DNA of 63,995 nucleotides, filler included, from Hyphochytrium catenoides (lineage: Eukaryota > Protista > Hyphochytriomycota): the NCBI GenBank assembly GCA_900088475.1. It is 6 parts of 6 records of this genome, joined end to end, with 100 filler letters (N's around TTAATTAATTAA, not from the genome) between each part and the next. Parts side by side here need not be neighbours in the genome. Positions count along the whole stretch, not along the records: positions 11,650 to 35,021 come from FLMG01003890.1; 5 more parts are not named here. One strand, written 5' to 3'. Positions 11,690 through 33,603 of this stretch are shown one piece after another; within the stretch, counting starts at the first letter, position 1; every line of letters starts with the position of its first letter. Below the pieces are notes generated by a model, which made no database searches, was not told the origin of the DNA, and saw nothing but the letters and a program-made list of their open reading frames with translations. Made by a program: the position numbers and the translations under genes.

Positions 11690-12050
11690 ACTTATTGCTA
11701 CTACTATCGCTAGTAACGGACTAATGCTAGAAGAAGAAGAAAGAGAAGAAGAAGAGGAAGAAGAAGAGAAGAAAAGCTAAAAAGCCTTAGGCTCATCCAT
11801 CATCTCAGCTCGAACCTGCTTTTTTATGGTTTACGGTTGATGTCATAACAATGAAAAACTACTACTATCACTACTAACAGACTAATTCAAGAAGAAGAAG
11901 AAAGTGAAGAAGAAGAAGAGGAAGAAGAAGAGAAGAAAAGCTAAGAAGCCTTAGGCTCTTCCATCATCTCAACTCGACCTGCTCCCTGCTCATTCATCAT
12001 CAGAAAAAGAAGAATCATAGTTGAATTCCTCAGTAATGATGATTTTGTGT
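11690..12050 (-). mobile_element. Two tandem 3'-tail fragments of the CRE-like retroelement
   Basis: Reverse complement of 12845-13070. Shares AAGCCTTAGGCTC..CATCATCTCA.CTCGA.CCTGCT and the GAAGAA-rich tail. Confidence 0.7.
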
Positions 12051-12670: not shown

Positions 12671-12780
12671 AAGGGTTTTATTATGATAAATAAATATACA
12701 TATTCTGGTATTATTATATCTATCTTTCTACGCTTTCTTTTTCTCCTTTCTACAAAGGAACAAAAAAGTTGAGCTCGACG

Positions 12781-12843
12781 GTGTTGACATGATGGTTGCT
12801 GGCGATGACATGGTTGCTGGTGATGAGATGGTTGCTGATGGTT
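12781..12843. repeat. About 18-nt minisatellite, 3 copies (GATGGTTGCTGG.GATGA)
   Basis: Direct reading of tandem units. Confidence 0.75.
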
Positions 12844-12844
12844 C

Positions 12845-13070
12845 ACCTCTTCCTCCCTCCTCCTTCTTCTCCGCTCATCATTACTGAGGACATCAACTAT
12901 GATTCTTCTTTTACTGGTGATGAGCAGGGAGCAGGTTCGATGTGGGATGCTGGAAGAGCCTAAGGCTTCTTAGTTTTTCTTTCCTTCTTCTTCCTCTTCT
13001 TCTTCTCTTTCTTCTTCTTCTAGAATTAGTCTGTTAGTAGCGATAGTAGTAGCAATAAACATAAGAAATA
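12845..13070 (+). mobile_element. 3'-tail fragment of the CRE-like retroelement (opposite orientation)
   Basis: CCTCCTTCTTCTCC..CATTACTGAGGACATCAACTATGATTCTTC..GATGAGCAGGGAGCAGG followed by a TTC-rich tail, as in the other copies. Confidence 0.72.
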
Positions 13071-15039: not shown

Positions 15040-16170
15040 TTAGTTATAATAGTAGAAGATATATGTATATAAGAAGAAGAAGGAGAAGAAAATGAAGAGG
15101 AGACGAGAGCGACAAAGCCCTCGACTTTTCGACAGGTTCTCCTGCTCCCTCACCATCAATGACAGGAAAGAAAGAAGATTCATAGTTGAACTCTTCCGCA
15201 ATATTGATAGGAGACGGAGGAGGAGAAGAAGAAGAAGGCGTGGCACCGAGACCATCATCATCGCCGTGCTCACACATGCAAGCTAGAGCGGCGTCCAGCT
15301 GCTGAACAGAAATAAGCTTCAGAATCTGAATCGCATTCTCTCCATGGATGTGCGACAGACATTCTGGCATTGAAAGTCAGAGTTTTTGCCAACCGAGACC
15401 AATGACCAAGAGGACGGGACGCCTCAAAAGCGGCACGAACACACTGAAGCTTGACCAGCTGTTGCACAGAGTCTAGGACATGCGGCATAGCAGCACCACC
15501 AAAAGACTCCCAGACGAGCGGCACAACTTATAGCCCCACAGCCTGACAGGGACGCTCATACTTCCTCCTCAACTTCGCTTTCTCAGACAAACGACCTTGA
15601 TAGCCGGGGTGGACTGCTGCATAGGGAACGGTTCTGGATGGCAGCGAATCCGTGACGGACACATCAACGGCCGAGTACTGATAGGAAGGTGACAATCCAC
15701 GAACCAACCAATCTCCGGGCGTCCGATTGGAGCCCGGAAGAAGGTGGCGAGGTTCGCGGGAGGAGACTCTGAGACCAGAGTCCCGCAAGCATGAATGAGA
15801 AGGTCTTGTACACGGCGGTAACCTTGATGAGCGCCACCACCCCGACAACAGACTGTGCTATGATCGCCAAAGACATCCATTGTTCAACGGGCACAGGACA
15901 GGCAAGAGGCTGGAGTGCGGACAAGAGCGAGAAACCTAGAAATCGCCCCAACAGCATCACCCGGAGCACCAACCGGAGACGGAACCTTCAACTGCAACCA
16001 GTGTATTTCCGAAGGAAAGCAGCCCCTGCGTGCGGGAGAGAAGCAGCCTGCACGCGAGCCTTCGAGCACAAGTCCAGGCCAGCATCATGCAGAAGACAGG
16101 AGAACATCGGAAGCCGTCATCCAAGCAAAGCGTCACAGGTAACATTTACCTGGATTCTCCCAGCTTGAAA
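15040..16170 (-). mobile_element. Degenerate 5'-truncated CRE-like (RLE) non-LTR retrotransposon, copy C
   Basis: ACPVP..MDVFGDHSTVCCRGGGAHQGYRRVQDLL (CCHC-type knuckle), then REPRHLLPGSNRTPGDWLV..SAVDVSV..SEKAKLRRKYERPCQAVGL..PLVWESFGG. This is the restriction-like endonuclease (PD..D..K) C-terminus of CRE-type elements. Frameshifts and stops are present. Confidence 0.85.
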
Positions 16171-18111
16171 AACCCTTAATAAAAAAGTGAGTAGTTCTAC
16201 TATTCGTCGTCAGAAAAAGGAGAAGAAGAAAGAGAAGAAGGAGAAGACGAGGAAGAGGAAGAAAGAAGAAGAAGAGACAACATCTTCCCTTATTATAATT
16301 ATAGATGACCAGTTTTTTCTCCTTCCGACTCCTTGGTCTGCCTTTCTATTGTCTAAGAAGGAGGAGCCGGAGTTCCTGCTATGATTCTACTGCAGAAAGG
16401 GCTCTCTCTTTCTCTCTCTCTCGCTCGCTATATATATATATATATATCACTCTCTCTCTCTTCTCCAGCTGCCGGACGAACAGACATTGACCGCAAGAAG
16501 TGTACAATGGGAAGGAAGAGAGCCAGAGAAGGAGAGCGAACGTGAGTGTGTACGAGAGAGAGAAAGAAAGAGAAAGAGAGAGTCATGGGACCAGAGAGGG
16601 AGAGAAGAGAAGGGAAAAGAAGGGTGCAGAAAAAGCATCTAACAAGTAGACGGAGAGAGAAAGACTGAATGGAGACGAAGACTGGGAAAGCTCGTCTAGT
16701 TCTTCTCCACTTCTTCAAAGCTGTGTTGGCATTTCGTGCTGGCCGTCTAGTTCTACCCTCTCGAGTTCTGTTGCCTGCTTCCCAGCAGTTCTCCTGATAT
16801 CTTACTGGCATCACGAGTTTTTTTCTTGTTCTGTCATCCGTATTGCTTGCTTCCTCTTTCTTCTCTCTCTTTCTTCTTCTTTCTTTCTTTCTTCCCTCTC
16901 TGACCCGCCCGCCTTTCTCTGCCAAGATATGTTGGACAGGGACCCTAGTGCTTGATGCAATGCATTGACTCATCTTTCTCCGAAAAAAGTTCTTATCTCC
17001 TCCTCTTTCATCTTTTTTTCTACTCTCCCTCCTTGTTTCCTTGCTTCTCTTTCTCCACTCTCCATTCTCCCTCTCTCTCTCCCTCCTCTCTCTCTCTCTC
17101 TTCAAATCAGAACTCTCTCTTCTTTATCTATAGAAGACAGCAAGAGACTCTTCGGATCAGAGTCCTATCTTCTTTTTTATAGGAGTAGAAGATTAACGGC
17201 CCCGTTCTGGAGAAGAAAAACGGAAGAAGACTCTTTGCTCGGAGCAACCCTCCCGCCTTTCGCTGCCCAGATAACGTTTGATGCGCTTTATCGGTCATCT
17301 TTCTGCTAAGTTCTTGTTGTCTCTTCTTCATTCCCCTTTCCCTTCTACTTGCGTCCTCGCTTCTCTCTGTCTCTCTCCACTCTCCATTCTCTCTCTCTGT
17401 CTCTCTCTCTCCCCTCCTCTCTTCTCCTCTGTTCTCTCTCTTTTTTCTTTTCTAGAATATTGGATCCGCTCTGGAGGAAGACAGAAGAATATTCGGAAGG
17501 ACTCTTCCCATTGAGGACAAAAGAGATGATGCCTTCTCGCTGCCTCACCACCATTCTCCGTTTGCTAACATGACCACCAGTGTGTAAAACTGTCGAGAGA
17601 GAGAGAGACAAAAGAGGAGAGATGGACAATGAGAGAGAAAAGCAGGCAGACAGAATACGACGGTGTCCCACCTCAGGACTATAGATATTTCAGAGAAGCT
17701 CCGACTTTCTTCCTCTGTTTTCACTCTCTGCTGGACTGTCACCTTCCATAGGTAGACTCCGGGGATGAGTTCGCAATCTCTTTTCTTTTCTATCTTCTAT
17801 ATTGAAGGGCTCTCTTCTCTCTCTCTCTCTCTTTCTTCGCCTCCTCTCTTTCTCACTCCTTGTCTCTCTTACTGACAATCTCTCTCGCTACCTATTCCCA
17901 GATAAGCAGATAAGTCTACCTCCTACTCCCCATCATTGTTCTTTGTCTGCTGGACTTCACACCTCTCTTTGTCACAGAGAAGCCGCTGTCCTCCATGCGA
18001 AGCTTCTCGTCAATGGAGTGATCTCTGTCTTTGTCTCTCTCTCTGTTGGATCAAAGAAAAGCGACTTGGCAGGCATCATCATCACGGTGAAGAAGGTGGA
18101 AGAGAAGAAGG

Positions 18112-19998
18112 ATGGCGGCCAACAGACGGCCGAGAAGCTCGCGCCTAACGGCAAGACCGCTGCTGGTGTCCTCCCTACTTTTCTCTCTTCTCTCCCTTCT
18201 TTTTCTGATCTCTTTCTCTTCACTTCCTTCTTTCATCCACGCTGCTGCTCCACTATCTCCTAACCCTACTAAGCATTCCAAAACGTTAAGAGCTCTGGTT
18301 GCCGGCGGTAAACCACCACCGAAAGCGTTGGCAAAGACAACAAAGACTCCTCTTCCACCCAACAAGGAACCTGCGACGACGCGGCAATCAAAGGTTCCTG
18401 GGCGAACATGGAAGCAATGGGGGCAACAGCAGGTAGAAGGAGCACGAAGATGGGTGGTATCATTGTGGCGTCAAGAGACTATGAAAGAAAGACAAGCCAT
18501 GGCTGCACTAGAGGATGTCATCTCTAATGCAAGACAAAAGTATATGGGATGGAAGGAAGCCAAAGCTGCTTTTCTTAGTCTGATTACTGCGCGCCAACCG
18601 CAACAGGAGGTGGGGTTAGAGAAGGGCATGATCACTTTTCCGCGAATAGATCCAGAAGAGTACCGGACACTTCGGGACCAGGTCGAAAAAGGTCATGCCA
18701 ATGCCGATACTCTCGTCTTCCAAAGGCTCGATAAAGAAAACCAACGACGAGAACTAGGCCGATACATGGCGAGCTTATCGTCAGCTCCGAAAGCCATTTA
18801 CTTGATATTCCTTCGCAATCTCTCAAAAGATCAGCTGGAGGCGTACCTCAGTTTGGGACGCGAAGAAAGAGCAGAGTTCGAGTTTATAAAAGGACTCACA
18901 GAAGAGGAGCGGGAGCAGTATCTCACGATGACTCCTGATCAACAAAAGCAAAAGAAATTTGATCTTTATGCCACAGAAAAGGAGAAGGAGTTCTACAACA
19001 GCTTGAAGCTGCAGCCTGATGATCAACGGGAATACATGGAATTCCTTACCGCGCTCAGTCCTGCGGATCTGGTGAACTATCACGCCTATCCACCCCACGA
19101 TCGCTACATGGATTTCAAGTTCCACAAGCAGCTCACAGTTGATGAGCTGAATCACTATCTCACCTTGGACCCGCGTGAACAAATGGATTATAAGGCTTTT
19201 TTCAAGAGCCTCCGCCCTGAGGACCTCGAGGTCTATCGCAAGTTTCGCCCTTTTGATAAAAGGGATTTCGAGTTTCGAAAAGGGCTCACAGAAGAGGAAC
19301 TGAAGACGTATAACGTCGATAGCTCTACGCAAAACTTCGTAGGACATTTTTGGCGAGACCCAACTGCTTATCGACGGCGGTTCAATTTATTTAAGAGGTT
19401 CTTCACAGCGGCGGAGAAAGATTACTTTGACAAGGACAGGCCTTATTTTTATTCATCACAACGAGACGACGCCTTCGAGCCTTTTATACGAAAGCACATC
19501 AAAGGAGATCCCAAGTTCAACAATGCGATAAGCGAGGTTATTCAGTTTGTGGCACAAGCAAAAAACCTTAACGCGGAGAATCTTCAACTCTTTACTGAGC
19601 AGCTCTACACCATGTGGCGGATCCTAGACGTGTTAGACAACAATCCCTTGGGCCTGAAAGGCTATGACGAATCCATCCGACAACGGGACTTCATTAAGGG
19701 TGATTCAAATAAGTACGATATGCAGGCCGACCAAACGGTCTTTCTTCATAGAGCGGTAGCAGACCTGGAACAACTCTTAGAAAAAGTCAGTCCTCTCTTG
19801 GTGGCCGATGCGCCTCATCAGGACCACCCTGTTTTAGTTGCCTCTCTCCTCAGAGTCCTGCAGAGTGGGACGGAAGCCAGCAGAGCCAGGCTGACCCAGC
19901 TTCGCCAAGTCCTTGACTACGTTGTGGATAAGAGGATACAAGAATATTACCAATCGTCAGGTACAAGGACTTGGGACAGGAAGCAAGAGAAGCCCTAA
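18112..19998 (+). CDS. Predicted secreted 628-aa protein with about 7 tandem ~26-aa helical repeats; function unknown
   Basis: Intact single-exon ORF. Basic n-region and hydrophobic h-region ending FSSLPSFIHAA. Internal repeats F.K.LT.EEL..Y..L.P.EQ. Confidence 0.85.
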   Translation: MAANRRPRSSRLTARPLLVSSLLFSLLSLLFLISFSSLPSFIHAAAPLSPNPTKHSKTLRALVAGGKPPPKALAKTTKTPLPPNKEPATTRQSKVPGRTWKQWGQQQVEGARRWVVSLWRQETMKERQAMAALEDVISNARQKYMGWKEAKAAFLSLITARQPQQEVGLEKGMITFPRIDPEEYRTLRDQVEKGHANADTLVFQRLDKENQRRELGRYMASLSSAPKAIYLIFLRNLSKDQLEAYLSLGREERAEFEFIKGLTEEEREQYLTMTPDQQKQKKFDLYATEKEKEFYNSLKLQPDDQREYMEFLTALSPADLVNYHAYPPHDRYMDFKFHKQLTVDELNHYLTLDPREQMDYKAFFKSLRPEDLEVYRKFRPFDKRDFEFRKGLTEEELKTYNVDSSTQNFVGHFWRDPTAYRRRFNLFKRFFTAAEKDYFDKDRPYFYSSQRDDAFEPFIRKHIKGDPKFNNAISEVIQFVAQAKNLNAENLQLFTEQLYTMWRILDVLDNNPLGLKGYDESIRQRDFIKGDSNKYDMQADQTVFLHRAVADLEQLLEKVSPLLVADAPHQDHPVLVASLLRVLQSGTEASRARLTQLRQVLDYVVDKRIQEYYQSSGTRTWDRKQEKP

Positions 19999-21136
19999 GC
20001 CAGAGGAGGGTGGTGAAGTAGGAGAAGAAGAAGCTGTAGCTGCTACCACCACCACCACAAATGCCTAATAAAGCGAAAGATTAAGAGCCATCATCATCAT
20101 CGTCGTAACATGCACGCGGCTCCGCTGCGTCTTGCTCATCCGTCCAGCCACGACCGACTAACCAACGTCGGGAAGGGAAGCTTCAATGTCTTCTATATCT
20201 CTGGGATCTATTTCATCTTTTACTGCTGCTCATTATGTCGCAGCGGGGGAGAGGACAAAGAGAAGAAGAAGAAAGAGAGGAAGGACACGCGAGTTGAGAC
20301 ATGCTCTGTTCCTTCTTCAATGGAGGATCAGAAAAGCAACGTCCCTTCGCCGTCGTTCTCTTTCGCTCCACAGCTTTTCTCTTTTATCTTCCTGCCATCA
20401 TCACCATCATTGCTAGTATTTCTTCTCCCTACGAGGACGAGATAAGGTAGCAAATCGTAGGAGGGCCAGCAGTCTTTGCCAAGAAGTCCGTGCTATGCAT
20501 CCATCCAGGACTGAGAGTCATGGAAGAAAAGTGGCCATTCTCCGGAACCCTTTCTTTCCATTTCTCTCTATGGCTATAGAGCTGCTGCTGAGAAGAGGAA
20601 GAGATGGGAAGAGTGAGAGACAGAAAGAAGGACAGAAACAGAGAGCAAACGAAGATGTCGGACAGACTTCAAAGAGCAACTCCAACTCTATTCCCTTTCT
20701 CTTCTCTGCTGCCAGTGTCGCCGCCAACGATGAGTCTCCAGCCTCTCAACGGCGCTTTCTTCTTCACTCTCTACACCTTCGTATACCCTTTCTCTCTCTA
20801 CCTACCTCTTTGCGTCTCTCTCTCTCTCCTTCTCTTGCTCACGTCTTGACGTACACCAATCTACTCTCTCTTCTCTCTCTCGCCCTCTCTTTCCCCTGTC
20901 CCAGCAGATATCCTCTCCTCTTCTAATCTACTTTTTCAATGTTAGGGAAGAGCCATCCGTCCTTTCTGCCGCGGCGCCGTTCCTGTCGCCGGTGCCAAGC
21001 CCACCATAAGGAACATCGAGGACGTCTTCTTTCTTCTGTTTGTCTCTTCCTTTGTGTCATTTGGATCCAGAGAAAAGAGATCGCAAGGGCCAGTCATCCC
21101 GCTAGACAAAGAAGGCTCAAAAGAAGAAGAAGAAGA

Positions 21137-21928
21137 ATGGGAGTCCGCCACCAAAGGAGACGCTCTTCGTGTGCGACGGGTCCGCTGCGGCGGCTCTTTC
21201 TCTTTCCTTCTTTGCCTGCTTATGATCTCTTTCTCTTCTCTTCGCTTCGTCCACGGCGCGCTGCTAGGTCGCACCAAAGCACCCCTCGGACACCAGATGC
21301 GGAAGGAAAGCACCTTCAAGAATAAAAAGAATAGGGAAGTGTCTTTTAAGAGATGGTTTCAGGCGCTTAAGGGAAAGCGAAACCAAGCTCTACCAAGGGC
21401 GTTTGAGCCACCACCAGAAGCTCCACAAAGAGCCTTTGCGCCGCCAGCTCCACCGGCTTTTGAAGAAGAGGCTCTTCCACTACGAGGTGCATCGAATGCC
21501 GACAGGTTTAGAGCAGAATTAGCTGCTTTGAACGCTTTGGATCCGAGGGAAGCACATTGGCGGCCAGATCCAGACGACAGCATCGCCTTAGAGCTCTTCG
21601 ACGCGGTAGGGCATCCAACTTCTGATGGAATCTTGCGAAAAATGGCAAGAAGCGATATCCGTCATCCCTGGGCATGATCTAAGAATTGTCAGCGCATACC
21701 TGGCAGGACAGGGTAAGAAGATTCCCTAGCGTTTCTTAGATCCAGACCTCTATCGCGGTCCTTGGGAAACCTGTTCGATTGTCGACAGTGGTGGAGCAGA
21801 CTTAGCTGCTTTGGATCTGGACGGCGGAGCACATTGGCGCTCATAGCCAGACAACCAGCTTGGACAGCCTCTCTCTCTCTCTCTCTCTCTCTCNNNNNNN
21901 NNNNNNNNNNNNNNNNNNNNNNNNNNNN

Positions 21929-21965
<37 letters not shown>

Positions 21966-22070
21966 TCGACGCGCTAGCCTATCAAAGTCTCGACCATCAT
22001 CGCTGGGAAGAAACGGCACCGATCTCAATGATCCCTGGCTTGTTGAGACCTGAGACAGGTCAGCAGGAAA
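21137..22070 (+). pseudogene. Frameshifted member of the shared-leader secreted family, with 'HPW' repeats
   Basis: MGVRHQRRRSSCATGPLRRLFLF (frameshift) LLCLLMISFSSLRFVHGA. Cargo LELFDAVGHPTSDGILRKMARSDIRHPW (frameshift) HDLRIVSAYLAGQG. A second repeat unit at about 21790-22040 is broken by a (CT)n expansion. Upstream 20500-21130 is homologous to 27850-28460. Confidence 0.68.
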
Positions 22071-22392
22071 TAACTGGGAGAAGAAGAGGGCAAGACGAAG
22101 CTCAACGACTTTTCGATAGTTCTAACTCGCTGTGGAGATCACTGAAGCCAACCATAATAGGGACCATCGTAGCCAGGAGATTGACAGAAGAGACGGGAAC
22201 ACGGACGGGAGAACATAGGAGAAGAAGAAGTGCGAGAATCATAGGAGACACTTCCAGAAAGTCAAAGTGAGAAATGCGACAGAAGCGTGACGAGAGAGAG
22301 AGAGAAAGAAAGAGAGAGAGAGAGAGANNNNNNNNNNNNNNNNNNNNNNNNNNNNNNNNNNNNNNNNNNNNNNNNNNNNNNNNNNNNNNNNN

Positions 22393-22423
<31 letters not shown>

Positions 22424-22896
22424 GTGAGAATGAGAGTGAGAGAGTAGAGCGGAGACATCGGGGCAAATGGCGACATCAGAGTGAGAGGAGAGACGTCCGT
22501 AAAGAGAGAGGAGGAGAAGATAGATAAGTCACAGACGCCCGAAGCACCTTTCACTGGGCAAACCTGCCCCGGACGCTGTACATTCAATATCATTTCGCCT
22601 CTTTGACGCCGGCGCCTTCTCCCTCCTCTAGTTTCTTCTCATCCTAGTCATTCATGTGGTCTTCCCGCCGTCTGTCTCTCCCTATTTATATGTATAGATA
22701 TATATCACTCTCTCTCTCACTCACTTCCTTTTCTCTTTCTCTCTCCCTCTTTCTCTCTCTTCTCTTTATTGTCTATTAGAAGGTTGGACGAAACATAGTG
22801 AGACTCTACGTAGCACATCTCAAAGAATCATCTCTTCAACGTTTCCCTGTTGTTCCTTAGAATTACATGGCTATAGGGCTGCCAAGAGAATAAAAG

Positions 22897-22934
<38 letters not shown>

Positions 22935-24154
22935 CGAGATCGTCTGAGCAAAGAGGAGCTCTAACTCTGTTACTCTTTCTTCTTTTCTCCCTGCTGCTAA
23001 TACATTGTGGCTAGCACGGAAAGCATGCACAAAAAGTCGTCGCGTGGCACCTGAGGCGAGATCTTTCCATCATCTCTGCTTTTATTTTTGTCTGTCAAAG
23101 AAAGATCTCTTTTTTCCATGTCGAGAGGGACAACGCAATGAAAGATAGACTGCTGCGGCCATTAGATGAGCCACGGCGGTAAAAGAGAGGAGCTTCTCAA
23201 TTTATTTCTCTCTTCTTCCTCCTCCGTCCATCAAGTCCTTCACTGACATTATCATCAGAACAACATCATCATCCCCACCAATAATGCGTGATGAGCAGGG
23301 AGCAGTGACCATCATATGATTGCCACGACGACGGTTCGGCTTAGGCATCATCATCACATCATCCTACCGTTTTCTCATGACGGCATCGATCATCATCTCC
23401 TGTGCTGCCTCTTCTTTCGTTTGCTCTCGTGCTGCGCTGCTGCTAGATGCTTTTGTTCAATGGGGATCACGGCTTATCAGTCCGCCGTCGACCGCGCCGG
23501 TGGTGAGCGGTGCTACGCAACGGCATCAGCGTATTATCATCGCGTCCAACCATCCTCTCCTCTTCGTCCAAGTCCATATAATAGTAGTAGGGACTTGTTT
23601 GTTACTTTCTTCATCGTCACGTCCAGAAAAAGCAGAAGATCCCTGCTGGGTCGAGACGCTTGCACCACTTACGATCACCTCTTTCTCACATAGCATATTA
23701 TTATAAAGAAGAACCGTAGAGTTACCTTCGACTCTCACACAGTGCCCGTACTCTATATCTCCTCTCTGTTCTTAGGCCCCAGGCCGTCCTATGATTTGCT
23801 ATCAGCAGGGCTGTCAGTTAGCTAAAGTTCTTTCTCTTAGTCCTCTCTTTTCCGCTTTGAGGGAGGAGGAGGAAGCAGCAGCAGCATCAAAGCAAAGGGA
23901 GGAAGACAGCCAGGGAAGGAGATAGAGCTTTTAAATAGCAGCAGGTATGCAGCTGCTGCTGCCGCTCGGGAAGCCAAGAAGAGAGAGGACGATCGTCGAC
24001 GAAAAAATAGACAGATAGATAGATANNNNNNNNNNNNNNNNNNNNNNNNNNNNNNNNNNNNNNNNNNNNNNNNNNNNNNNNNNNNNNNNNNNNNNNNNNN
24101 NNNNNNNNNNNNNNNNNNNNNNNNNNNNNNNNNNNNNNNNNNNNNNNNNNNNNN

Positions 24155-24480
24155 TTACTTATGAAGACCAACAGATATTGAATACGCTGTTGGAGGCGAT
24201 AGTAGGGCTGCACTACTACTCGTTTCCCATTATCACTACGCGCTATGTCACGATTTTTGAAGCAAGTGTGTCCTTTTCAAGCTCTTTCAGAGCGTCATTT
24301 AGTCAGTTGTTGCACTCTCCATATGTAGATTATTGGTGTTGTCCGCTTCGGCCATGGCTCTACGGGTTCTTCTTCCCGATCAGTTGTTGAATGATCCTTC
24401 TTTTCTTCTTCTTGTGGCAGAGAGTAGTGGAGATGATAGCCTTGGCGATTACTCTTCTCCTTCTTGTTCTTCTCCCTCTT
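24155..24480 (+). mobile_element. Highly decayed remnant of the CRE-like element
   Basis: TAGTAGGGCTGCACT and the following sequence weakly match copies A and B. Confidence 0.35.
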
Positions 24481-25202
24481 TTTTTAAAGTTTTGTTGCTG
24501 AGAAACCTAACTAAGATATTATCCTTTCTGCTGAATGATGAGGTCAAAGGAGAGAGAAAGAGGGAAAAACTTGTCTTTTCTTCTTTCTCTTACTTATGGC
24601 TGAGAAGTAGATATCGATCAAAACGACAAGAAGGACAGAGTAGACGTTTATCTTAGATCTTATAAGGAGGATGAAGACGAAGAAGAAAAGAGAGGGGAAG
24701 AGACCCCTCATCTCTCTCTTCTACCTATCAGAATTATCCTATGAAAGAGGAAATCAGATAGTATGTTCTTTATGAAAGACGTTAAGCTCTAGCTTTATTG
24801 ATCCACTACCATTGCACTTTCTCTCTCTCTCTCTCTCTCTGTGCCATATGGTGAACAAGAAGAAGAGCAAGAAGAGAAGAGAAGAAAGATTGAAAGAAAA
24901 AGGTAGAGACGACAAGGAGAAGAGAAGTGAAGAAATAACAAAAGCTAACATCTCTTAACATCTTTAGCAGTAAAAGAATAGGCCCTTGACATGTCTCCTG
25001 TGGAGAAGGAGAAGATGGAAAGAGTAGCAGCGGAAAACAAGCCACGAACCTGGGACAACTTCAAGTCAAGCCAACATGATGTCCTCCCATCGTCCAGCTT
25101 CCGAAGCAGCTACTTCAGGACCAAGCAGACCTTATGCTCTCTGATGCCGGTGCTTCCATCATTTCCTCCTTCTTGCCGAGGAAAGCGGCGGAGGCCCAGG
25201 CT

Positions 25203-25571
25203 TTATCTATTTTTCTGCGCTTGTGCCTCTGGTTGCTGCCGGAGCGGCGGGTTGCTTTGCTGGCGCTTTTGATGCGCTACCATCGCTGGAACTCTGTTTT
25301 TCCCTAAGTAGACGTCGGCTAACTCATTTTGCTGTGCTGTCCATTTTTGTCTGTGGTGTCTATGCCATTGCTTGATTGCTTGTGCCGACTTTTTGATAGG
25401 AGAGAACAGCTTTTTGGGAGTCCACTTAAATCCCATGCCATAAATCTGAACGGAGGGAAGAGAAGAGAGAGAGACCGTGATAACGGAGAGAAGAAAAAGG
25501 AGAGAGAGTACTAGCCGTTGTCCCATCTTCCGGGGCGACCGGTAGTACCTCTTGTTGGCTGGTGGTATCAT
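25203..25571 (-). CDS. Small predicted secreted protein of the shared-leader family (possibly truncated by a frameshift)
   Basis: MIPPANKRYYRSPRKMGQRLVLSLLFLLSVITVSLSSLPSVQIYG aligns with MAANRRPRSSRLTARPLLVSSLLFSLLSLLFLISFSSLPSFIHA of the 18112 ORF. Confidence 0.6.
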   Translation of the reverse strand: MIPPANKRYYRSPRKMGQRLVLSLLFLLSVITVSLSSLPSVQIYGMGFKWTPKKLFSPIKKSAQAIKQWHRHHRQKWTAQQNELADVYLGKNRVPAMVAHQKRQQSNPPLRQQPEAQAQKNR

Positions 25572-26714
25572 TTAGTCCTATTAACGTCCTTCCTTAGAGA
25601 GTGTTTTCTTGGTTCCTGCGGGCTCTGCAGAATTCCCGTTCAACTGACAGCGCCTGCGTTTCTCTTCTTTGTCTTCGTCAAGGATTTTCTCCGAGGGATT
25701 CACGGCTGACACATGGCAGCAGCGGGGATTAAGGAATGCTTTATCATCCACTGGGGAAGAGTGTAAAATGAAGCGGTGGAAAGGCCGGTGTTAGAAGACC
25801 TCTCTTTGCCTAGCTCCATTGTTTTGAGAAAGGACACGGAAGGTCCTATGCCCAATAGTAGTGTGGGTGAAAAAGGAAGGGAGAAAGAGCAAGAGAGAGA
25901 GAGAGAGGTGAGGAAGATAGCAAGAGAGAGAAGCGAGTGAAGGAGAGAGAGAGAAGGGCAAAAAGATAGAAAGAAACATCCGAAGGGAGAAAGACGGGGA
26001 AAGAGACTGACGACGGCTTCACCTCGTGACTTGGCAGCAGGAGAGCAAGAAAAAAGCAAAACTTACGAGCTGCCGAGGACAGACCGGACCTCCTTCTACA
26101 GTTCTAAAGGTGGGTTCTTCTGAGGAGCTCTCTGCGACAAGAATTTTTTTTCTTCCTCTTCCCTCATCCACTCATGCTCCTCTTCTATTACTATTATCCT
26201 TTCTAATCGAGTCGTTTTGTCGGGAAGAGGAGAAGCCGGAGGAGGGAAGAAGGCCAGCACCTCCATGTTCTGTTGCGACTCTCTTCTTCTTCTTCTTCGG
26301 CACGGTGAATGGAAAAAGAATAACTGTTTCCATAGATCATCGACGGAAGCGAGTGAGAGAAAGAAGAAAGGAGAACAACTACGTGCTTGTACAATATCTT
26401 TATAGAAAGAAGTGTGATTCACTTTCTAGGCGCAAAAAGTAGTCATCCTCCTCCCCCGACTATATTACTCAGGGCCATGGCTCGCATCAAGCACACTTAC
26501 AACGAGTCTTAGAACGATAATAAAGGAGGAAAGAGCCCGATGATGATGATACGAAGAATGACTCTTTACATCCGTCGTCCTCCTACAATTATTAATGCAA
26601 AGCAATGGCTTACTCTATCCCCCAGTTAAACTTCCAAGGAGTACAAGGATTCTTCCACGCCATCCTTGGGAACCACTAGTCGTACCAGACTACGAATCAT
26701 CGCTATATATATTA

Positions 26715-26955
26715 TGTATGGCAAAGTCTTGGTTCTCTTCCCACTCGTCGCTCTCTTCGTCCTCCACCATCAATATCAGCAAAGGTAGAATCATCATCAG
26801 GTCGAACTCCTCAGCAATAATAACAACAGGAGAAGGAGCGAGGGAGAAGCGATCCATCATCACATACACTCGACAAGGCAATCAAGAGCAGGACCCAACG
26901 GCTGTGGAGGAGAAACATGCTTCACCATCTGTCTCGCATTCTCATCATGGGTGCC
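26715..26955 (-). mobile_element. Decayed 3' fragment of the CRE-like element
   Basis: GAACTCCTCAGCAATAATAAC..GGAGAAGGAG and AAACATGCTTCACCATCTGTCTCGCATTCTCATCATGG match 15190-15350. Confidence 0.6.
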
Positions 26956-27317
26956 AATAGACACTACTTCTAGTCTTTTTATAGAGAAGAACTACCACTC
27001 TACTGACCGTAGCTCTACCACAACCAATAACCCTTGTACTACGATTATTATAACTGGTAACTGGGGACTAGTGAAGGAGAGAAGGGGCCTAGACACTGCC
27101 TCGACTATCTGGTGGTACGTCATGTCAAATTCTTTCTTTATTAGCTGAACGAGAGCTTCTTTCCCTTGATGTCTGTCTTTCTATCGCTCCATCTCCTACC
27201 ACCCGAGCTGTCTCTCTCTCTGCTCCGCAAGAATGATGAAAGACGAGGTTATACTCCGGAGTAAATAAAAGTAACTACGGAGTAAAGTGAAGTGCAGAAG
27301 ATGACTTAAGACGGGAC

Positions 27318-27352
<35 letters not shown>

Positions 27353-27375
27353 TATAGGGGGGGGGGAGAGAGAGA

Positions 27376-27449
<74 letters not shown>

Positions 27450-27763
27450 GGGAACTGGGATGGAGAACGCGACGGGAGAGCAAGATGGAACAAAGAGGAA
27501 GAGAAGGCCCGTCTTGGCTTTTTATCCCGGCCATTCCCGTCTCTTTCCGCTCTCTTTTTTCAATCTTCTTGCTCTCTCGCTCTCTCTCGCTCTCTTCGGT
27601 TCTCTATCTCTTTCTTCCCCTGGCTTTCCCTTCTTTGAACTGTTCCAGACAGATCTATGGTGATGCCTCCGAAGCTTGCCGTGCCCTTTCTCGCCTTCTC
27701 TCCGGTCAAACTCCTTCTTCTTTCCAATCAGCCTTCTTTCCTCCTCTTCCGGATCTCTCTCTA

Positions 27764-27802
<39 letters not shown>

Positions 27803-28469
27803 TCCTGTCTTCGATATATCTTGTCCTAGAAGGAAAGAGAGGCTCTATCTATGACTCAGGTTCGTAAAAGAAAAGATGCCATTCTTCTTCACCATTTCCC
27901 TTCTCTCTACGACTGTTAGAACTGCTGCTGAGAAGTGGGGTTAGGGGAGAGAGAGACAGAAAGGAGGACAGACAGAGACAGAGAGAAAGAAAACCAAGCC
28001 GTCGAACAGAGCTTCAGACCCTTTCATAGAGCCGCTACGACTATTCCCCCTATCTTCCTCTCTGCTGCTTTGTCGCCGCCAAGGATGAGGCTCCAGCCCT
28101 TCAATGTCTACACCTTCTTTTTCTGCCTGTCTCTCTACTTTCTCGGTCTGTCTGCCTGTCTCTCTCTCTCTTGCTCACTCTTTACGGTACACCTTCCTAC
28201 TCTCTCCTTCCTCTCCCTCGCTCTCTCTCGACCATGTCTCAGCAGATGTACTCTCATCATCGCTTCTCATCATTTATTTATTTTTGCGAGTCGTACGTCT
28301 TTCTGCCGCGATGCCCTTGCCGCCGGTGCGGCGCCCATCATAAGGCAATCAAGGAGATCCTTTCTATCTCTTCAGTTTGTCTCTCATTTCTTTCCTTTGC
28401 AAACAAAAAAAGGAGGAAAGAAGGATCATTAAGGCAGTACCGGAGATAAAGAAGGAGAAAATGACAAGG

Positions 28470-29153
28470 ATGGAAGTTCCGCAAGCGAAAACGCTCTTCC
28501 TCGGCGACGAGTCACCTGGGGCGGCGGCTCTTTCTAATTTTCTCTTTTCTTATGATCTTTGTCTCTTCTCGTTTCATCGTCCACAGTCGTCGGACCCGTC
28601 TTACCCGTGATCGTTCCTCATCGCCAGTCAGAAGGTCCTCATCGCAACCATTATCGCCGCAATCAAAAGTTCCCTTATCGATAATGCCTTCCGCAGCACG
28701 GCTTCTAGTGAAAAGACAGATCCAAGCAATTGGGAGAGGATGAGGAGGATAACGGAGCCTCATCCAGTGGGTCAGTATAACCCTCAGGTCCTACAGCTCT
28801 GTGACGACGTAGGCTATCGTATTCCCGAGCAGGTCTTACGAGGAATGGCAGAGGACAAAGCCCATCCTTGGAATAACTTGGCTGGCCTCTTCAAAGAACT
28901 GCAAAGAAAGCGTCTCACTCTTCCTGAGTGTCTACTGGAAAGTAATTACGGGAGGATGATAATGCTTATCGGGAGCGAGGGCATCCAAGGGAACTTGTAT
29001 GACCTTGAGGTCCTACGGCTCTGTGACGACGCAGGCTATCGTATTCCCGAGCAGGTCTTACGAGGAATGGCAACGAACGGAGCCGATCCTTGGAATAACG
29101 CCAATATCGTCATCGTACAACTGGTTTCTCAGGGGTTTCTGCACACCCCGTGA
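28470..29153 (+). pseudogene. Frameshifted member of the shared-leader secreted family, with two 'HPW/DPW' repeats
   Basis: Removing 1 nt after ATGGAAGT gives MEVRKRKRSSSATSHLGRRLFLIFSFLMIFVSSRFIVHS. A second shift occurs near 28740. Cargo contains two near-identical units, VLQLCDDVGYRIPEQVLRGMAEDKAHPWNN and VLRLCDDAGYRIPEQVLRGMATNGADPWNN. Confidence 0.7.
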
Positions 29154-29731: not shown

Positions 29732-29764
<33 letters not shown>

Positions 29765-29896
29765 GCGTCATCACCAGCAATAAGGGAGGACGGTTGTTAT
29801 CTCTGTTTATTGGGGACTAAAGGTGAACGTTGCGGATGGTACCGCGACGCTTCTAAGAGAAAGAGAGAAGAAGAAAGGGAAAGAAAGGGTAGACAT

Positions 29897-30080
29897 CTAG
29901 CTGCTCCAAGTCTTTTCTCTCTCTCTTCTGCTTCTCCAAAAAGAGAAGAGAAAGGCCGAAGAGAAGACAGAAGAGAGACTGAAGGCTACCAGCCACGGAA
30001 ATTGCTGCGGCCGATGAAAGACAATTCCTAGGCCTAACATTAGGACGGAGCACACTTGAGACAGAGCCACCTGCAGCAGC

Positions 30081-30126
<46 letters not shown>

Positions 30127-30285
30127 TCCGGGCAGTGTGTACGGAGAGAGAGAGAATCAGAGATAGACAGACAGACAGAGCAGGGAGAGAGAGAGAGAAG
30201 GGGGGAAGAAAAAGGATATGAGAGGCCGATAAAGACATTAGAGAGAATGTGGCAGAGATGGCAAAAGATAGACAGGAGGTTGTGT

Positions 30286-30317
<32 letters not shown>

Positions 30318-31432
30318 TGAGAAAGAGAGTCCGAGAACGGGGACGGCACAGGAGGTGGTATATAGAAGGAACGAGAGAATAAAGAGAGAGAGAGAGAAAG
30401 AGGACGAAAAAGAAGAGACAAGTCAAGGAGGAAAGTTTGGAGAGAAAACGCCAAACGATAGTGGAAAGGAGAAGGATCATGTTTCCCCCATGTGCCCTGT
30501 CGCTCTTCTCTCTCTCTCCCTCCCTCTCTCTCTTTCTCTTTCTCTCTTTCTTTTTCTCTCTGTGGCTCTTACCTGTGCGCCGTTGATAGTCCCTCGCAGC
30601 TCTGCCTGCACTTGTTCCTGCATAATCTGTGTCTCTGCCAGGTCTACCGTCCAGAGAGAGAAGCGAGAGAGAAATTGACAGATGAGGAGAGAATAGTCCG
30701 TCGAGAGAGACGCACCAGCTTGAGATGAGACAGATGAAGAGAGATATTATTAGAGGGAGAAAGAGAGAGAGAGAGAGCGATGGAGACAATGATGAAAGGA
30801 ATATGTTAGGCAAGGCAGCATTCGCAGAGCTCCTAGGAAAGTGTCTGGAAAATAGGGAGAAGGAACAGGCCAAAGAGAGGGNNNNNNNNNNNNNNNNNNN
30901 NNNNNNNNNNNNNNNNNNNNNNNNNNNNNNNNNNNNNNNNNNNNNNNNNNNNNNNNNNNNNNNNNNNNNNNAGAGGAAGAGACGAGAGAAAAGACCGAGA
31001 GACTGAACCATAAAAGTTGGAGAGAGAGAGATGAGAGAAATCCAACTAAATGAGAAAAGGGATCGTAAGAAAAGACATGCAGTTAATCAAGAGATAAGGG
31101 AGAGATACACAGAAAAGAGAGAAAGAGGACGGGGACAACAGAGAGAAGAGCAAGAGCACGGGCGGAGACTAGTAGGAAGAAGAAGATGCGATACAAAGCG
31201 AGACCAAGGAACACGGAGAAAGAGAGAGAGAATGAGAGAGAGCTCACCGAGGACAAAAGTGACTCCGATCGGAAGGAGAGACGCCCAGAAGGCCCAGGCC
31301 GCGGTCACCGCGATGGTCTCACAGTCTCCACCCAGTCGTCCTACCGCCAGAGGATAAAATAACGTTGCGCCTAAGCCTAAGATTGCGCCTAAACCTTGAC
31401 TGAGAGCGATCAGAGACGTCGGCACCTGCCAG

Positions 31433-31495
<63 letters not shown>

Positions 31496-32140
31496 GACGA
31501 ACAATTGTCAGACTCTTTTTCTCTCTCGTTTTCGCCTTCTTTCGCTAGCTTCGCCATTTGGCCTTGTACTAATCTTCTGCTGGCTCTGGTTCTCTTTCTC
31601 TATGCTCTCGCATTCTCAGTATCTTAGGGTTTTTACTTCCCATTCTGCGCGCTCTCTCTCACTTTTCTCTCTCTCTCCCCCCTCTCCCCCTTCTCTCTCT
31701 CTCTTTATGTATATATACGTCTATGTCTCTCTCTAATTCCTTTCATTCTGTTTCCTAACCTACTTCACCACCTCAGAGTCTACCCTGAACCTTCCTTGCC
31801 ATCTCTTGTTCTGCCATTCTCTATATTTGATTGCTTCTTTCTTCTTCTTCTTCTCTCTCTCTCTCTCTCTCTCCCTCTTTATGTTTGGCGTGTGTTGTTC
31901 TCTCTTACCTTCCGCCAGGTGAGATAAGAAGTATTAAGCGCTCCCTGGTCGAGCACTGACATGAAAAGAAGGCAGAAGGCCACAGAGGCGAGAAAGACAG
32001 GGTGCGAGCGGTAGAGAGAGAGAGAAGAGAAAAGAGAGGAAGAGGGAGAAGAAGCGGAAGAGACGGAAAGAGAAGGGATCCGTTTTGTTTCTGCGAGGCA
32101 GAGACAGTGAAATAGTGACAAAGTTGTTAGGGATTGTGAA

Positions 32141-32203
<63 letters not shown>

Positions 32204-32441
32204 AGGAGCCAACATTGGAAAGAAAGCAATTGAGACAGCGAAGAAAACAGGGAGAGAAAGAAAGACAACGAGAAAAGGAGAGAGAGATTTATTTGCTTAC
32301 GAAGAGCTTTAGAACTATAAAAGACTTCGGTCAGAAAGACATATTCCAGAGGGAGAGACATCAGATTCCACGCTCCTGGTGACAGTCACAGGGAGGGCGA
32401 GAGAGAGTGAGAGAGGAAGAAAGAGAGAGAAACAGAGAGAA

Positions 32442-32478
<37 letters not shown>

Positions 32479-33542
32479 AAGGCAGGTGGAGATGTAGAGA
32501 GTGCGCGGCAAAAAAGAGAGCCAGAGCGCACGAGAGATATTGTGAGAGAGTGTGAGAGCAAGAGCGAGAGAGATAGTGAGAGAGAAAGGAGACAAAAGGA
32601 AAGGTTGACTTACAGGAGAGAATGTGGAAGGGACACAGAGAGAGAGGGGAAAAAAGAAGGAGAGAGAGAGAGCAGGAAAGTGAGAGGAAGAGAGACAACT
32701 CCCAAAGACAGGTCGACAGGCGAGAGAGAGAGAGAGAAATATACATCTCAAAACCACTCGCAGGTAGATAAAACACAGAGGAAGAGGAAGCCATAGAGAA
32801 AAAAATTGAGAGAGCAAGGGAATGAGAGAAAGAGAGAGACAGAGAGAAAGTGAGAGAAAGAGAGAGAGAGAGTTCCCACCTACTACGATGGCGCCTGTCA
32901 CTCCTCGGGCCAGAGGTGTCTGACCGCAGTACTGATACGTCAAACCAAAGGCACAAGGGGCCAAGACCTTTAGGGAATAAGGAACGTACATCAAACAACG
33001 AGAGAGACAGAGAAGGAGAGAGAGAGAGAGAAAAGGAGAGAGAGAGAGAGAAAAGGGGAGAAAAAGAGACAATAGCGGCAGATCGGCAAAAGAAGAGAGG
33101 CGCCCAACGGAATGAGAACAGGGAAAGAGAATACGAACAAGGGACACACCCGAATAGGGAAAGAGAGAGAGAGGGAATGACATACAAGGGTCTTTAGCGT
33201 GGGGGAGAGAAAAGAGCTCTCAGAGAAAGGGATATAGTGAAAGACGAGTAGCCAAAGGGGAGAAAGAGGAAGGCATATGAAAAAAAAAGAAGGGCGTGAG
33301 AGCAAAGAGAGAGAAGAGAGTGAGAAAGAGATATTGTTTGGGTGGAAGAATTAAGAGACTAAGAGAGAGAGAGGCGCAGCGATAGAGCCAGAGAGAGAGA
33401 GAAAGGAGAAGGGGCAACAGCAAGGACCGGAGAAACCAAAATAGCGAGGGGGAGAGAGAAAAGAGAAAGGGAGCCAAAGAAGGACCGGGACAACCAAAGC
33501 AGGAAGAGAGAGAGAGAGAATATATATAGAGAGAGAGACAAA

Positions 33543-33603
<61 letters not shown>

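Follow-up and report, generated by a model that had tools for sequence, protein, structure and literature searches.

A probable lineage-specific gene family of Hyphochytrium catenoides that joins one upstream and leader module to varied bodies

The secreted salivary gland protein (SSGP) genes of the Hessian fly, an insect plant parasite, form tandem clusters; their 5' flank and signal peptide are strongly conserved, and the mature region is highly diversified. Many copies are pseudogenised, the proteins are small, and their expression in the gland is documented. Frog dermaseptin precursors and the conotoxin superfamilies of cone snails pair a conserved signal module with hypervariable mature peptides, and the boundary between the two lies near a processing site. 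Here we describe a locus of comparable build in Hyphochytrium catenoides, within a window (the whole stretch of DNA analysed) of 63,995 nucleotides, filler included. We judge it probable that its genes belong to a lineage-specific multigene family in which one upstream and leader module, the leader probably encoding a signal peptide, precedes varied bodies. The family is a real yet fairly ordinary case of fast, lineage-specific evolution.

Four loci in the window open with one homologous leader, as the earlier note had read them, and alignment and profile searching agree on its layout: a basic n-region leads into a 16-20-residue hydrophobic core, and an SSLPxV(H/Q)(G/A) end follows. The copies start at 18112 (+, gene A), 21137 (+, B), 28470 (+, C) and 25571 (-, G), with genome-wide profile E values of 1e-15, 7e-11, 5e-12 and 4e-18, respectively (Table 1). 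Searched against the 61 Mb genome, the profile of about 45 residues recovers this family only. The nine significant copies all lie on three contigs, the five outside the window being on C2994 and C655, and no other hit reaches significance. Primed names (B', C', D', E', G') denote the paralogous copies on C2994, and C2953 is the contig that holds A, B, C and G. The profile also matches G', which was absent from the seed alignment. The cassette DNA and leader profile match C2953, C2994 and C655 and, beyond these, only a single doubtful relic on C1424. Intact reading frames opening at the leader ATG run to 628, 296, 246 (plus 467), at least 299, 122 and 126 residues; they are uninterrupted from that ATG in A, B', F (up to its contig end) and G, and nothing in the family's reading frames points to a separate exon for the signal.

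Table 1. Coordinates of family features in the window.
Feature	Position	Strand	Description
Upstream block, gene A	17512..18111	+	Weak homology; collinear profile match ends 2 nt before ATG, 97.5 bits
Gene A	18112..19998	+	Intact single-exon ORF, 628 aa
Leader of A	18112..18243	+	Residues 1-44; net +5 n-region, hydrophobic core, SSLPSFIHA
Repeat array of A	18787..19296	+	About 6.5 repeats of 25-26 residues, residues 226-395
C-terminal domain of A	19372..19947	+	Residues 421-612
Upstream block, pseudogene B	20429..21136	+	Profile and nucleotide matches, 277 bits masked
Pseudogene B (HPW-repeat class)	21137..22053	+	Alignment to intact paralogue B'; tblastn pieces in three frames
(CT)n insertion within pseudogene B	21868..21961	.	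Contains assembly gap 1 (21894-21928)
Possible leaderless upstream-block relic	22396..22999	+	Weak, 30-45 bits; may be CT-rich similarity only
Gene G	25203..25571	-	Intact ORF, 122 aa; leader and short, very basic, Cys-free body
Upstream region of G	25572..26283	-	Clear homology only to G' upstream
Upstream block, pseudogene C	27808..28469	+	Nucleotide and profile matches, 269 bits masked
Leader of pseudogene C	28470..28602	+	Profile E=5e-12 in shifted frame
Body remnant of C	28740..29153	+	Open, 137 aa, two HPW/DPW repeats of about 70 aa

Judged by its sequence features, the leader is most likely a cleavable ER signal peptide, and the products would then enter the secretory pathway. Ahead of the hydrophobic stretch lies an n-region of 15-20 residues with a net charge of +2 to +6 in A, B', E', F and G. 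The 19-residue Kyte-Doolittle hydropathy maximum reaches 2.2-2.5, and 21-27 residues are free of charge and of H, Q and N (2.49 and 27 residues in A). Residues -3 to -1 read V-H-G, I-H-A, V-H-A, V-Q-S or I-Y-G, each behind a conserved SSLP turn, and small residues at -1 and -3 are kept across body classes; the leader of A is likely cut after A44. Generic eukaryotic Sec-type signal peptides and anchors likewise have a positive n-region, a hydrophobic core, a polar c-region and small residues at -1 and -3. The h-region of a typical signal peptide spans about 7-15 residues, whereas the longer core found here also fits a signal anchor. Since both the n-region and the hydrophobic stretch exceed those of typical signal peptides, cleavage is uncertain. 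Pooled over the 11-codon leader core, pN/pS is 0.54 and pS 0.37, weak signs of selection on the peptide.

These features can also be read, for the same family, as an uncleaved signal anchor, which would make the products type II membrane proteins rather than soluble secreted ones, with the short basic tail in the cytosol and the variable body toward the lumen or the outside. The long uncharged stretch, its hydropathy maximum and the long, strongly positive n-region speak for this reading, as does the AlphaFold2 model of B', in which residues 12-36 form one confident helix (pLDDT 79-91). The conserved Ser-Ser-Leu-Pro turn and the small -1/-3 residues (VHG, IHA, VHA, VQS) found across classes resemble instead a signal-peptidase site, and we regard an anchor as unlikely.

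Homology between copies ends sharply at the site where a signal peptide is predicted to be cleaved. In the four pairs measured (B-C, B'-D', B'-F and E'-F), nucleotide homology stops 112-124 nt after the ATG, and mean pairwise identity passes from 0.5-0.6 upstream, through 0.76 in the leader core, to the alignment baseline of 0.38-0.41 just past the site. Pairs of different class have no detectable nucleotide similarity in the 900 nt past the leader, and at the protein level they share leader similarity only. The earlier claims that the products diverge downstream of the leader, and that the leader and 5' flank are better conserved than the mature protein, thus agree with these profiles, although CT/GA content weakens the second for the 5' flanks of A, E' and G. 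We distinguish at least four unrelated body classes: helical repeats plus a common C-terminal domain (A and E'), HPW repeats (B, B' and C), repeats of about 85 residues (F) and a short basic protein (G and G'). The mature proteins are Cys-free and charged, the majority of bodies consist of internal repeats, and the two modelled with AlphaFold2 (A and B') are predicted to be helical. None of the bodies occurs elsewhere in the genome, none of the mature proteins matches a Pfam family, and searches of 5.8 billion and of 1.84 billion proteins, and of the PDB, found no homologue of the bodies. At a leader-core pS of 0.37 neutral bodies should still align and do not, which suggests that remodelling or replacement of the bodies has outpaced point substitution. 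We further note a faint basic Trp motif 30-55 residues past the leader in A, B' and E', which hints that some homology may reach beyond it.

An older family whose bodies have diverged past recognition, with gene conversion homogenising the 5' ends so that upstream region and leader look younger than they are, offers another account of this boundary. If conversion tracts were delimited by loss of homology, the four pairs would share one endpoint, as they do, and the Trp-rich motif suggests ancient common descent for part of the body. The comparison between contigs points the other way. The window from 20.5 to 30.9 kb is a segmental duplicate of C2994 (71-84% identical), and counterparts across the two contigs (B-B' 79%, C-C' 79%, G-G' 75%) are closer than the same-contig neighbours B and C (68%), so that no homogenisation has taken place within a contig since the duplication. 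Synonymous divergence in the leader core is, moreover, similar to the upstream divergence and not lower, and we find conversion improbable.

The family as we reconstruct it would have expanded through duplications of three kinds (local tandem, inverted and segmental), every copy beginning with a common module some 0.7-0.8 kb long, a CT/GA-rich upstream region followed by about 130 nt of leader-coding sequence. Copies die by frameshift, as B and C have done in the window and D' and C' on C2994. Intact and decayed copies lie side by side and bodies are unalike across classes, in keeping with the birth-and-death family proposed in the earlier note.

The cargo types described there also stand. Gene A consists, in order, of leader, Pro/Lys-rich linker, helical repeats and C-terminal domain. 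Its 26-residue array has a period of 25-26, with autocorrelation peaks at lags 25 and 52 that exceed 500 of 500 shuffles (0.30 against a shuffled maximum of 0.04). The sole relative of its C-terminal domain is a twice-repeated domain downstream of the leader copy E' (E=1.8e-5, 27% identity). The AlphaFold2 model of A is all-helical but of low confidence (pLDDT 40.8), and protein databases returned no homologue from outside the genome. Gene G encodes the short basic peptide (pI 11.5) and shares 63% protein identity with G'. The dN/dS of this pair, 0.94 overall, gives little evidence of constraint on G; with 0.63 for the mature part and 0.59 for the domain duplicates of E', evolution is fast yet not above 1, the other pairs being too diverged to measure.

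Both B and C contain HPW/DPW repeats (E=1e-8 for B' against the C reading frame), and alignments confirm that both are frameshifted pseudogenes. Compared with B', B has an 8-nt deletion in the leader, further indels whose lengths are not divisible by three, stop codons in frame and an inserted microsatellite, whose flanks adjoin in B' at C2994 16119/16120. The B leader sequence recurs without indels in contigs of two DNA runs (X1 and X2). In C, a single additional base 8 nt past the ATG shifts the leader out of the frame of the start codon, 12 nt are missing in frame from the hydrophobic core, and the body remnant lies in a third frame relative to ATG and leader. D' and C' are also dead by frameshift.

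Upstream of the leader, the collinear blocks reported for the three plus-strand loci are solid for B against C but not for A, which is unmatched once CT/GA runs are masked. B and C are 68% identical over 797 nt (E=9e-59, DUST on), and their similarity persists after all CT/GA runs are masked (277 bits for the B block and 269 for C), a treatment under which controls score nothing. Homology in B, C, B', D' and F survives this masking; matches of A, E' and G to other classes vanish, and the case for a single block common to the copies is therefore firm in B, B', C, C', D' and part of F alone. The profile score of the A block is inflated by its CT/GA content, unmasked upstream queries scoring 40-95 bits against unrelated CT-rich loci. 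Homology can still be argued for A, despite this low complexity, from collinear blocks and a rare 15-mer: its local alignments lie at equal distance from the ATG (z = 5-11 against shuffles keeping local composition), and the non-repetitive 15-mer (17699-17713 in A) falls between -413 and -465 in A, B, B' and E', four of its eight matches in the genome. After masking, G retains 55-88 bits to G' and zero to the other copies, and its likeness to the latter is inseparable from GA/CT composition. The C2994 counterpart of the possible leaderless relic keeps just 5-8 bits. The upstream block is a putative promoter and 5' UTR.

Composition might account for more than this, in that the similarity could be largely a by-product of CT/GA-rich DNA, with neither shared descent nor function behind it. 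Pyrimidine tracts translate to Leu, Ser, Phe and Pro, and leader-like peptides and similar upstream regions would thus arise; the leader core does lie in a CT-rich tract, unrelated loci of that kind reach the scores given above, and the A, E' and G matches to other classes are lost on masking. The alignment nonetheless holds specific non-repetitive leader positions, and the profile matches this family only in 61 Mb. The upstream homology of B, C, B', D' and F outlasts masking that silences controls, long reading frames begin exactly at the leader ATG, and the rare 15-mer keeps its offset in four copies. These observations argue largely against composition for the leader and the B/C class, and we hold it very unlikely overall.

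The earlier note further placed the island among retroelement debris, which the surroundings do not support. Positions 22450-27320 have no dispersed copies; apart from the paralogous contig, they match nothing but simple GA sequence. A dispersed-repeat nest lies elsewhere, at 11.7-16.4 kb, upstream of the island and adjoining gene A. Ten ORFs, eight from the nest and two within the island, contain no Pfam domain, and hence no reverse transcriptase, gag or integrase. Three assembly gaps fall in or beside microsatellites and none within an intact gene: gap 1, inside pseudogene B, and gap 2 lie in (CT)n and (GA)n arrays, respectively, and gap 3 is bordered on the left by a (GATA)n array, gaps 2 and 3 being intergenic. 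In three DNA runs no contig bridges any of the gaps; C2994 is collinear across all three. A transposon fragment scattered genome-wide is ruled out, copies being on three or four contigs only. It is scarcely credible that the cassette is a mobile-element end, for which the adjoining nest would speak and the few contigs and repeat-free island do not, or that the leader serves as a bipartite mitochondrial sorting signal, since its Arg/Ser-rich N-terminus and hydrophobic stretch resemble intermembrane-space signals but a clustered, fast-evolving, repeat-built family is atypical of mitochondrial proteins.

An effector or toxin role, which the earlier note had favoured, is unsupported. Hyphochytrium catenoides has been described as putatively free-living in a published analysis. 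When the first 150 residues of every intact member were scanned with regular expressions, neither an RxLR nor an LxLFLAK (Crinkler) motif was found; Pfam searches gave no RXLR or WY match and no similarity to toxins or antimicrobials, and the elicitin family was not found in the genome. As a separate observation, the genome's HSP90 is closest to oomycete HSP90 (82-85%).

The oomycete RXLR and Crinkler (CRN) effectors likewise join an N-terminal targeting module to C-termini that are divergent, contain little Cys, are helical and often consist of repeats; their clusters also gain and lose copies, and the host lineage here is related to oomycetes; the Hyphochytrium family differs in having neither motif, no Pfam match and no sequence relatives. 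Unlike the dermaseptin and conotoxin precursors, it has no propeptide, cysteine framework or sign of a separate signal exon, although here too there is one conserved signal-encoding module and a conservation boundary near the (predicted) processing site. The likeness to Hessian fly SSGP genes extends to clustering, a conserved 5' flank and leader, diversified bodies and pseudogenes; in contrast to these, the present family belongs to a probably free-living protist and has large helical repeat bodies.

All four leader-bearing loci picked out in the earlier note are present in the window (table), on the piece at window 11650-35021, which is contig C2953 and consists of eukaryotic DNA with ~48% G+C and packed with (CT)n and (GA)n tracts. 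Further leader copies fall on two other contigs, with B', D', E', G' and a degenerate C' on C2994 and F on C655, and all copies align as one leader composed of a Met, a basic n-region (often with RRRSS), a hydrophobic core and a c-region SSLPxV(H/Q)(G/A). Searched against the whole genome (61.03 Mb in 4759 records), a leader profile built from eight seed copies finds nine significant places (E-values 5e-21 to 4e-10), all confined to these three contigs, and recovers G' even though this copy lies outside the seed alignment. The only additional match, on contig C1424, is doubtful and truncated (E=0.007). With nine genome-wide matches, all on three contigs, the leader is thus no chance resemblance and no dispersed repeat. 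The truncated C1424 locus (L039), which may be a family relic on a fourth contig, retains a basic n-region and the beginning of a hydrophobic core, followed by GA-rich sequence and then a stop; an upstream-like stretch immediately precedes its leader-like start.

Leader-bearing copies and associated features (window coordinates unless another contig is named; ORFs counted from the leader ATG unless stated otherwise)
Feature	Location	Strand	ORF or state	Body class or character
A	18112	+	628 aa, intact	with E': common C-terminal domain of ~190 residues
B	21137	+	pseudogene	with B' and C: common HPW/DPW repeats
C	28470	+	one extra base 8 nt past the ATG; leader frame without in-frame start codon; 12-nt deletion in hydrophobic core	with B and B'
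G	25571	-	122 aa, intact	with G': short, basic
B'	C2994		296 aa, intact	with B and C
C'	C2994		without most of the leader	
D'	C2994		frameshifted	
E'	C2994		246 aa, then a 467-aa ORF in another frame	with A
G'	C2994		126 aa, intact	with G
F	C655		at least 299 aa, runs off the contig end	~85-residue repeats
E' region (L024)	C2994 20096-22196		246-aa and 467-aa ORFs overlap	
Truncated leader-like start (L039)	C1424 5447-5524	-		
(CT)n insertion in B relative to B'	21868-21961			
Gap 1	21894-21928			within the (CT)n insertion of B
Gap 2	22328-22392			intergenic
Gap 3	24026-24154			intergenic
~1.1 kb unit, in triplicate	29734-30835; C2994 11700-12740 and 269-1191			72-80% identity
~1.07 kb repeat unit	15071-16141			on more than 25 contigs, 73-84% identity
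~300 nt repeat unit	12768-13062; inverted partner 11859-12042			88-96% identity
Purine-rich stretch (~3.4 kb)	31600-35021		low-complexity ORFs only	+ strand AT skew ~0.65, GC skew ~0.47

Across the leaders, the n-region carries a net charge of +2 to +6, 19-residue Kyte-Doolittle hydropathy maxima are 2.2-2.5, and small residues stand at -3 and -1 behind a conserved SSLP turn. As predicted from these features, the anatomy is that of a cleavable signal peptide, although a hydrophobic stretch of this length would be compatible with a signal anchor too. Over an 11-codon leader core, pooled pS is 0.37 and pN 0.20 (ratio 0.54, from a small sample of non-independent pairs), which points to constraint at the peptide level. 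Divergence of the leader core is similar to that of the upstream DNA.

Homology between copies ends where the leader does. BLAST alignments (DUST on) stop after the ATG at +117/+114 for B-C, +112 for B'-D', +124/+121 for B'-F and +121/+121 for E'-F, in all four measured pairs at the V(H/Q)(G/A) codons. Mean pairwise identity in the nine-copy alignment is 0.5-0.6 upstream, 0.76 in the leader core and 0.38-0.41 beyond it, this last value being the level that MAFFT yields for unrelated bodies (the body being the protein part after the leader). Pairwise nhmmer over the 900 nt after the leader detects no similarity between any pair of different classes, B'-C being the only match, and at the protein level matches between classes are limited to the leader. 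The bodies fall into four classes (table), and those that can be measured evolve fast: dN/dS is 0.63 between the mature parts of G and G' and 0.59 between the duplicated domains of E'. Neutral bodies at the divergence of the leader core should still align by nucleotide, yet they do not; the bodies must therefore have been either reshaped through repeat turnover and indels or exchanged for others.

The bodies have no other occurrence in the rest of the genome, and no relatives were found in Pfam, the Atlas, the PDB or large protein collections, among which the proteome of the H. catenoides assembly was not included. These searches included a word-indexed protein search with A and B' and an exhaustive HMMER search with A. 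The single hit, P0121, was rejected as a relative, as it arises from six or seven identical repeats of ~30 bits each. Mature proteins of the family lack Cys, contain 0-1 N-glycosylation sequons and are charged, in most cases basic. AlphaFold2 without an alignment predicts all-helical structures for A (pLDDT 40.8) and B' (pLDDT 50.8), at a confidence too low to support a fold search. We infer that the products are secreted or surface-exposed helical repeat proteins.

Intact and broken copies lie side by side. We note that the ORFs of A, B', F and G are uninterrupted and reach 1.9 kb; the end of contig C4306 carries an F-type repeat (78% identical) and a stop. B is a pseudogene that, relative to B', has an 8-nt deletion within the leader, several further frameshifting indels, and in-frame stops. 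Its leader region is recovered without indels in contigs assembled from two DNA runs (X1 and X2), which rules out an assembly error as the source of the frameshift. The remnant of C, a 137-aa HPW ORF, sits in a third frame. Either a frameshift or an intron that escaped recognition accounts for the break in E'; inspection of the printed sequence by eye found no GT..AG interval of fitting length and phase that would join E' to the downstream 467-aa ORF. This downstream ORF contains two copies of the A-type C-terminal domain.

The upstream DNA calls for more caution. An initial upstream profile search gave collinear matches up to the ATG in all copies (A at E=3e-30). We rejected raw nhmmer E-values as evidence of upstream homology because unrelated CT-rich loci score equally high (40-95 bits with the same queries). 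One of these controls, L039, may itself be a family relic. When all pyrimidine runs and all purine runs of at least 8 nt are masked, upstream homology is strong in B, C, B', C' and D', partial in F and clear for G-G', and the masked control loci give no upstream match; the upstream regions of A, E' and G then have no match to other classes. Loss of similarity on CT-repeat masking was a refuting condition set in the earlier note, and the upstream block withstands it only in part, for similarity survives in the B/C/D/F group and is lost across classes for A, E' and G. Best local alignments of A to C, B', B, F and E' nevertheless lie at near-equal distances from the ATG (e.g. -513 vs -523) and score above local-composition shuffles (z = 5-11), with a small margin over reversed sequences for A-E'. 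Further, A, B, B' and E' all carry the 15-mer CTCCRACTYTMTTCC between -413 and -465 and supply four of its only eight genome matches (a reversed control pattern has nine); the pattern was derived from the same copies, and the informative point is the common position of a non-repetitive block. We conclude that the upstream block is firmly common to the B/C/D/F group, and that A and E' probably have it as well, if weakly. We make no claim for the 'relic' upstream copies at 27264-27635(-), 29897-30562(-) and 22396-22999, as those tested within the three contigs were lost on masking.

The gene cluster on C2953 has a counterpart elsewhere in the assembly. From 20.5 to 30.9 kb the window matches C2994 17.6-0.3 kb collinearly but inverted, with 71-84% identity, and C2994 has additional sequence, D' included. 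Copies at corresponding positions on the two contigs are more alike than neighbours on one contig, which speaks against any recent homogenisation of the 5' ends. The two contigs are either paralogous segments or extremely diverged haplotypes. Across three DNA runs, window 21000-26900 has only ~12 variant positions in 5.9 kb, far fewer than the reported genome-wide SNP frequency near 0.0275 (~2.75%) (PMC5795050) would give. Hemizygosity may explain so few variants, or else C2953 and C2994 may represent two haplotypes that have diverged strongly. A ~1.1 kb unit present in triplicate sits downstream of a cassette copy each time and may be the 3' part of an ancestral duplication unit.

Three gaps are bridged by no contig from the three DNA runs, whose contigs stop at the flanking microsatellites. 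C2994 is collinear over all three, gap 1 lies downstream of earlier lesions in B, and no conclusion rests on reading across them. The DNA runs containing the C2953 stretch are dated 2011 and 2017, and a search for RNA runs that contain it found none. The published assembly comprises 4758 scaffolds and one mitochondrial record, built on a GAIIx library with a HiSeq library added later, and its size is given as 65.7 Mb, against 61.0 Mb for the genome used here (PMC5795050).

Upstream of A, window 11.7-16.4 kb consists of dispersed repeats, which have at least 129 matches spread over dozens of contigs. The ~300 nt unit found there, with its inverted partner, looks MITE-like. Within the cluster, the only matches of window 22450-27320 are to C2994 and to GA simple sequence, and a Pfam scan of ten ORFs (eight from the 11.7-16.4 kb region, two inside the cluster) found no domain; the description of the cluster as interleaved with retroelement debris is therefore unsupported. 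Beyond the cluster, the + strand of the last ~3.4 kb of the piece is extremely purine-rich.

Taken together, the family is real, clustered and evolving by birth and death. The earlier note's proposal of a birth-and-death family with a conserved 5' module is borne out by the clustering of intact and frameshifted copies, the unrelated bodies and the end of homology at the leader end. Its suggestion of an effector- or toxin-like function finds no support; RxLR and LFLAK motifs are absent from the first 150 residues of all intact members.

A more far-reaching reading, which we consider unlikely, is that the cassette (the CT/GA-rich upstream block plus the ~130 nt leader) is a self-contained promoter and secretion-leader module with a CT-born core, attached to new repeat-expanded coding sequence in a nursery of de novo secreted proteins. 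The hydrophobic core would have its origin in a CT-rich tract that runs on from the CT-rich DNA upstream, and each local duplication would have placed the module in front of new coding sequence grown out of short repeats, so that the bodies would not be diverged copies of one ancestral body. Bodies that are absent elsewhere in the genome, mostly repeat-built and all Cys-free would fit such an origin, as would the helical models of A and B' and the end of homology at the putative cleavage site in the four measured pairs.

Birth and death around a conserved 5' module, the reading we favour, has a bearing on the hyphochytrids, a scarcely studied group closely related to the oomycetes. The nearest relatives of an intronless HSP90 gene in the same genome are oomycete HSP90s (82-85% identity, against 79-81% for ochrophyte HSP90), and a search of the genome for the elicitin family found none. 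The practical value is modest: a clean leader set for testing secretion, and a locus marked for long-read assembly. The family might also show how signal peptides can be seeded by CT-rich DNA. A conserved 5' module with unrelated bodies is an architecture already known, met here in a lineage that has had little study. H. catenoides is putatively free-living according to a figure legend (PMC5795050), and a taxon-restricted family that keeps its secretory 5' module while its bodies change would offer a compact free-living comparison for modular secreted repertoires, one that would bear on the origin of such repertoires as the RXLR and CRN effectors.
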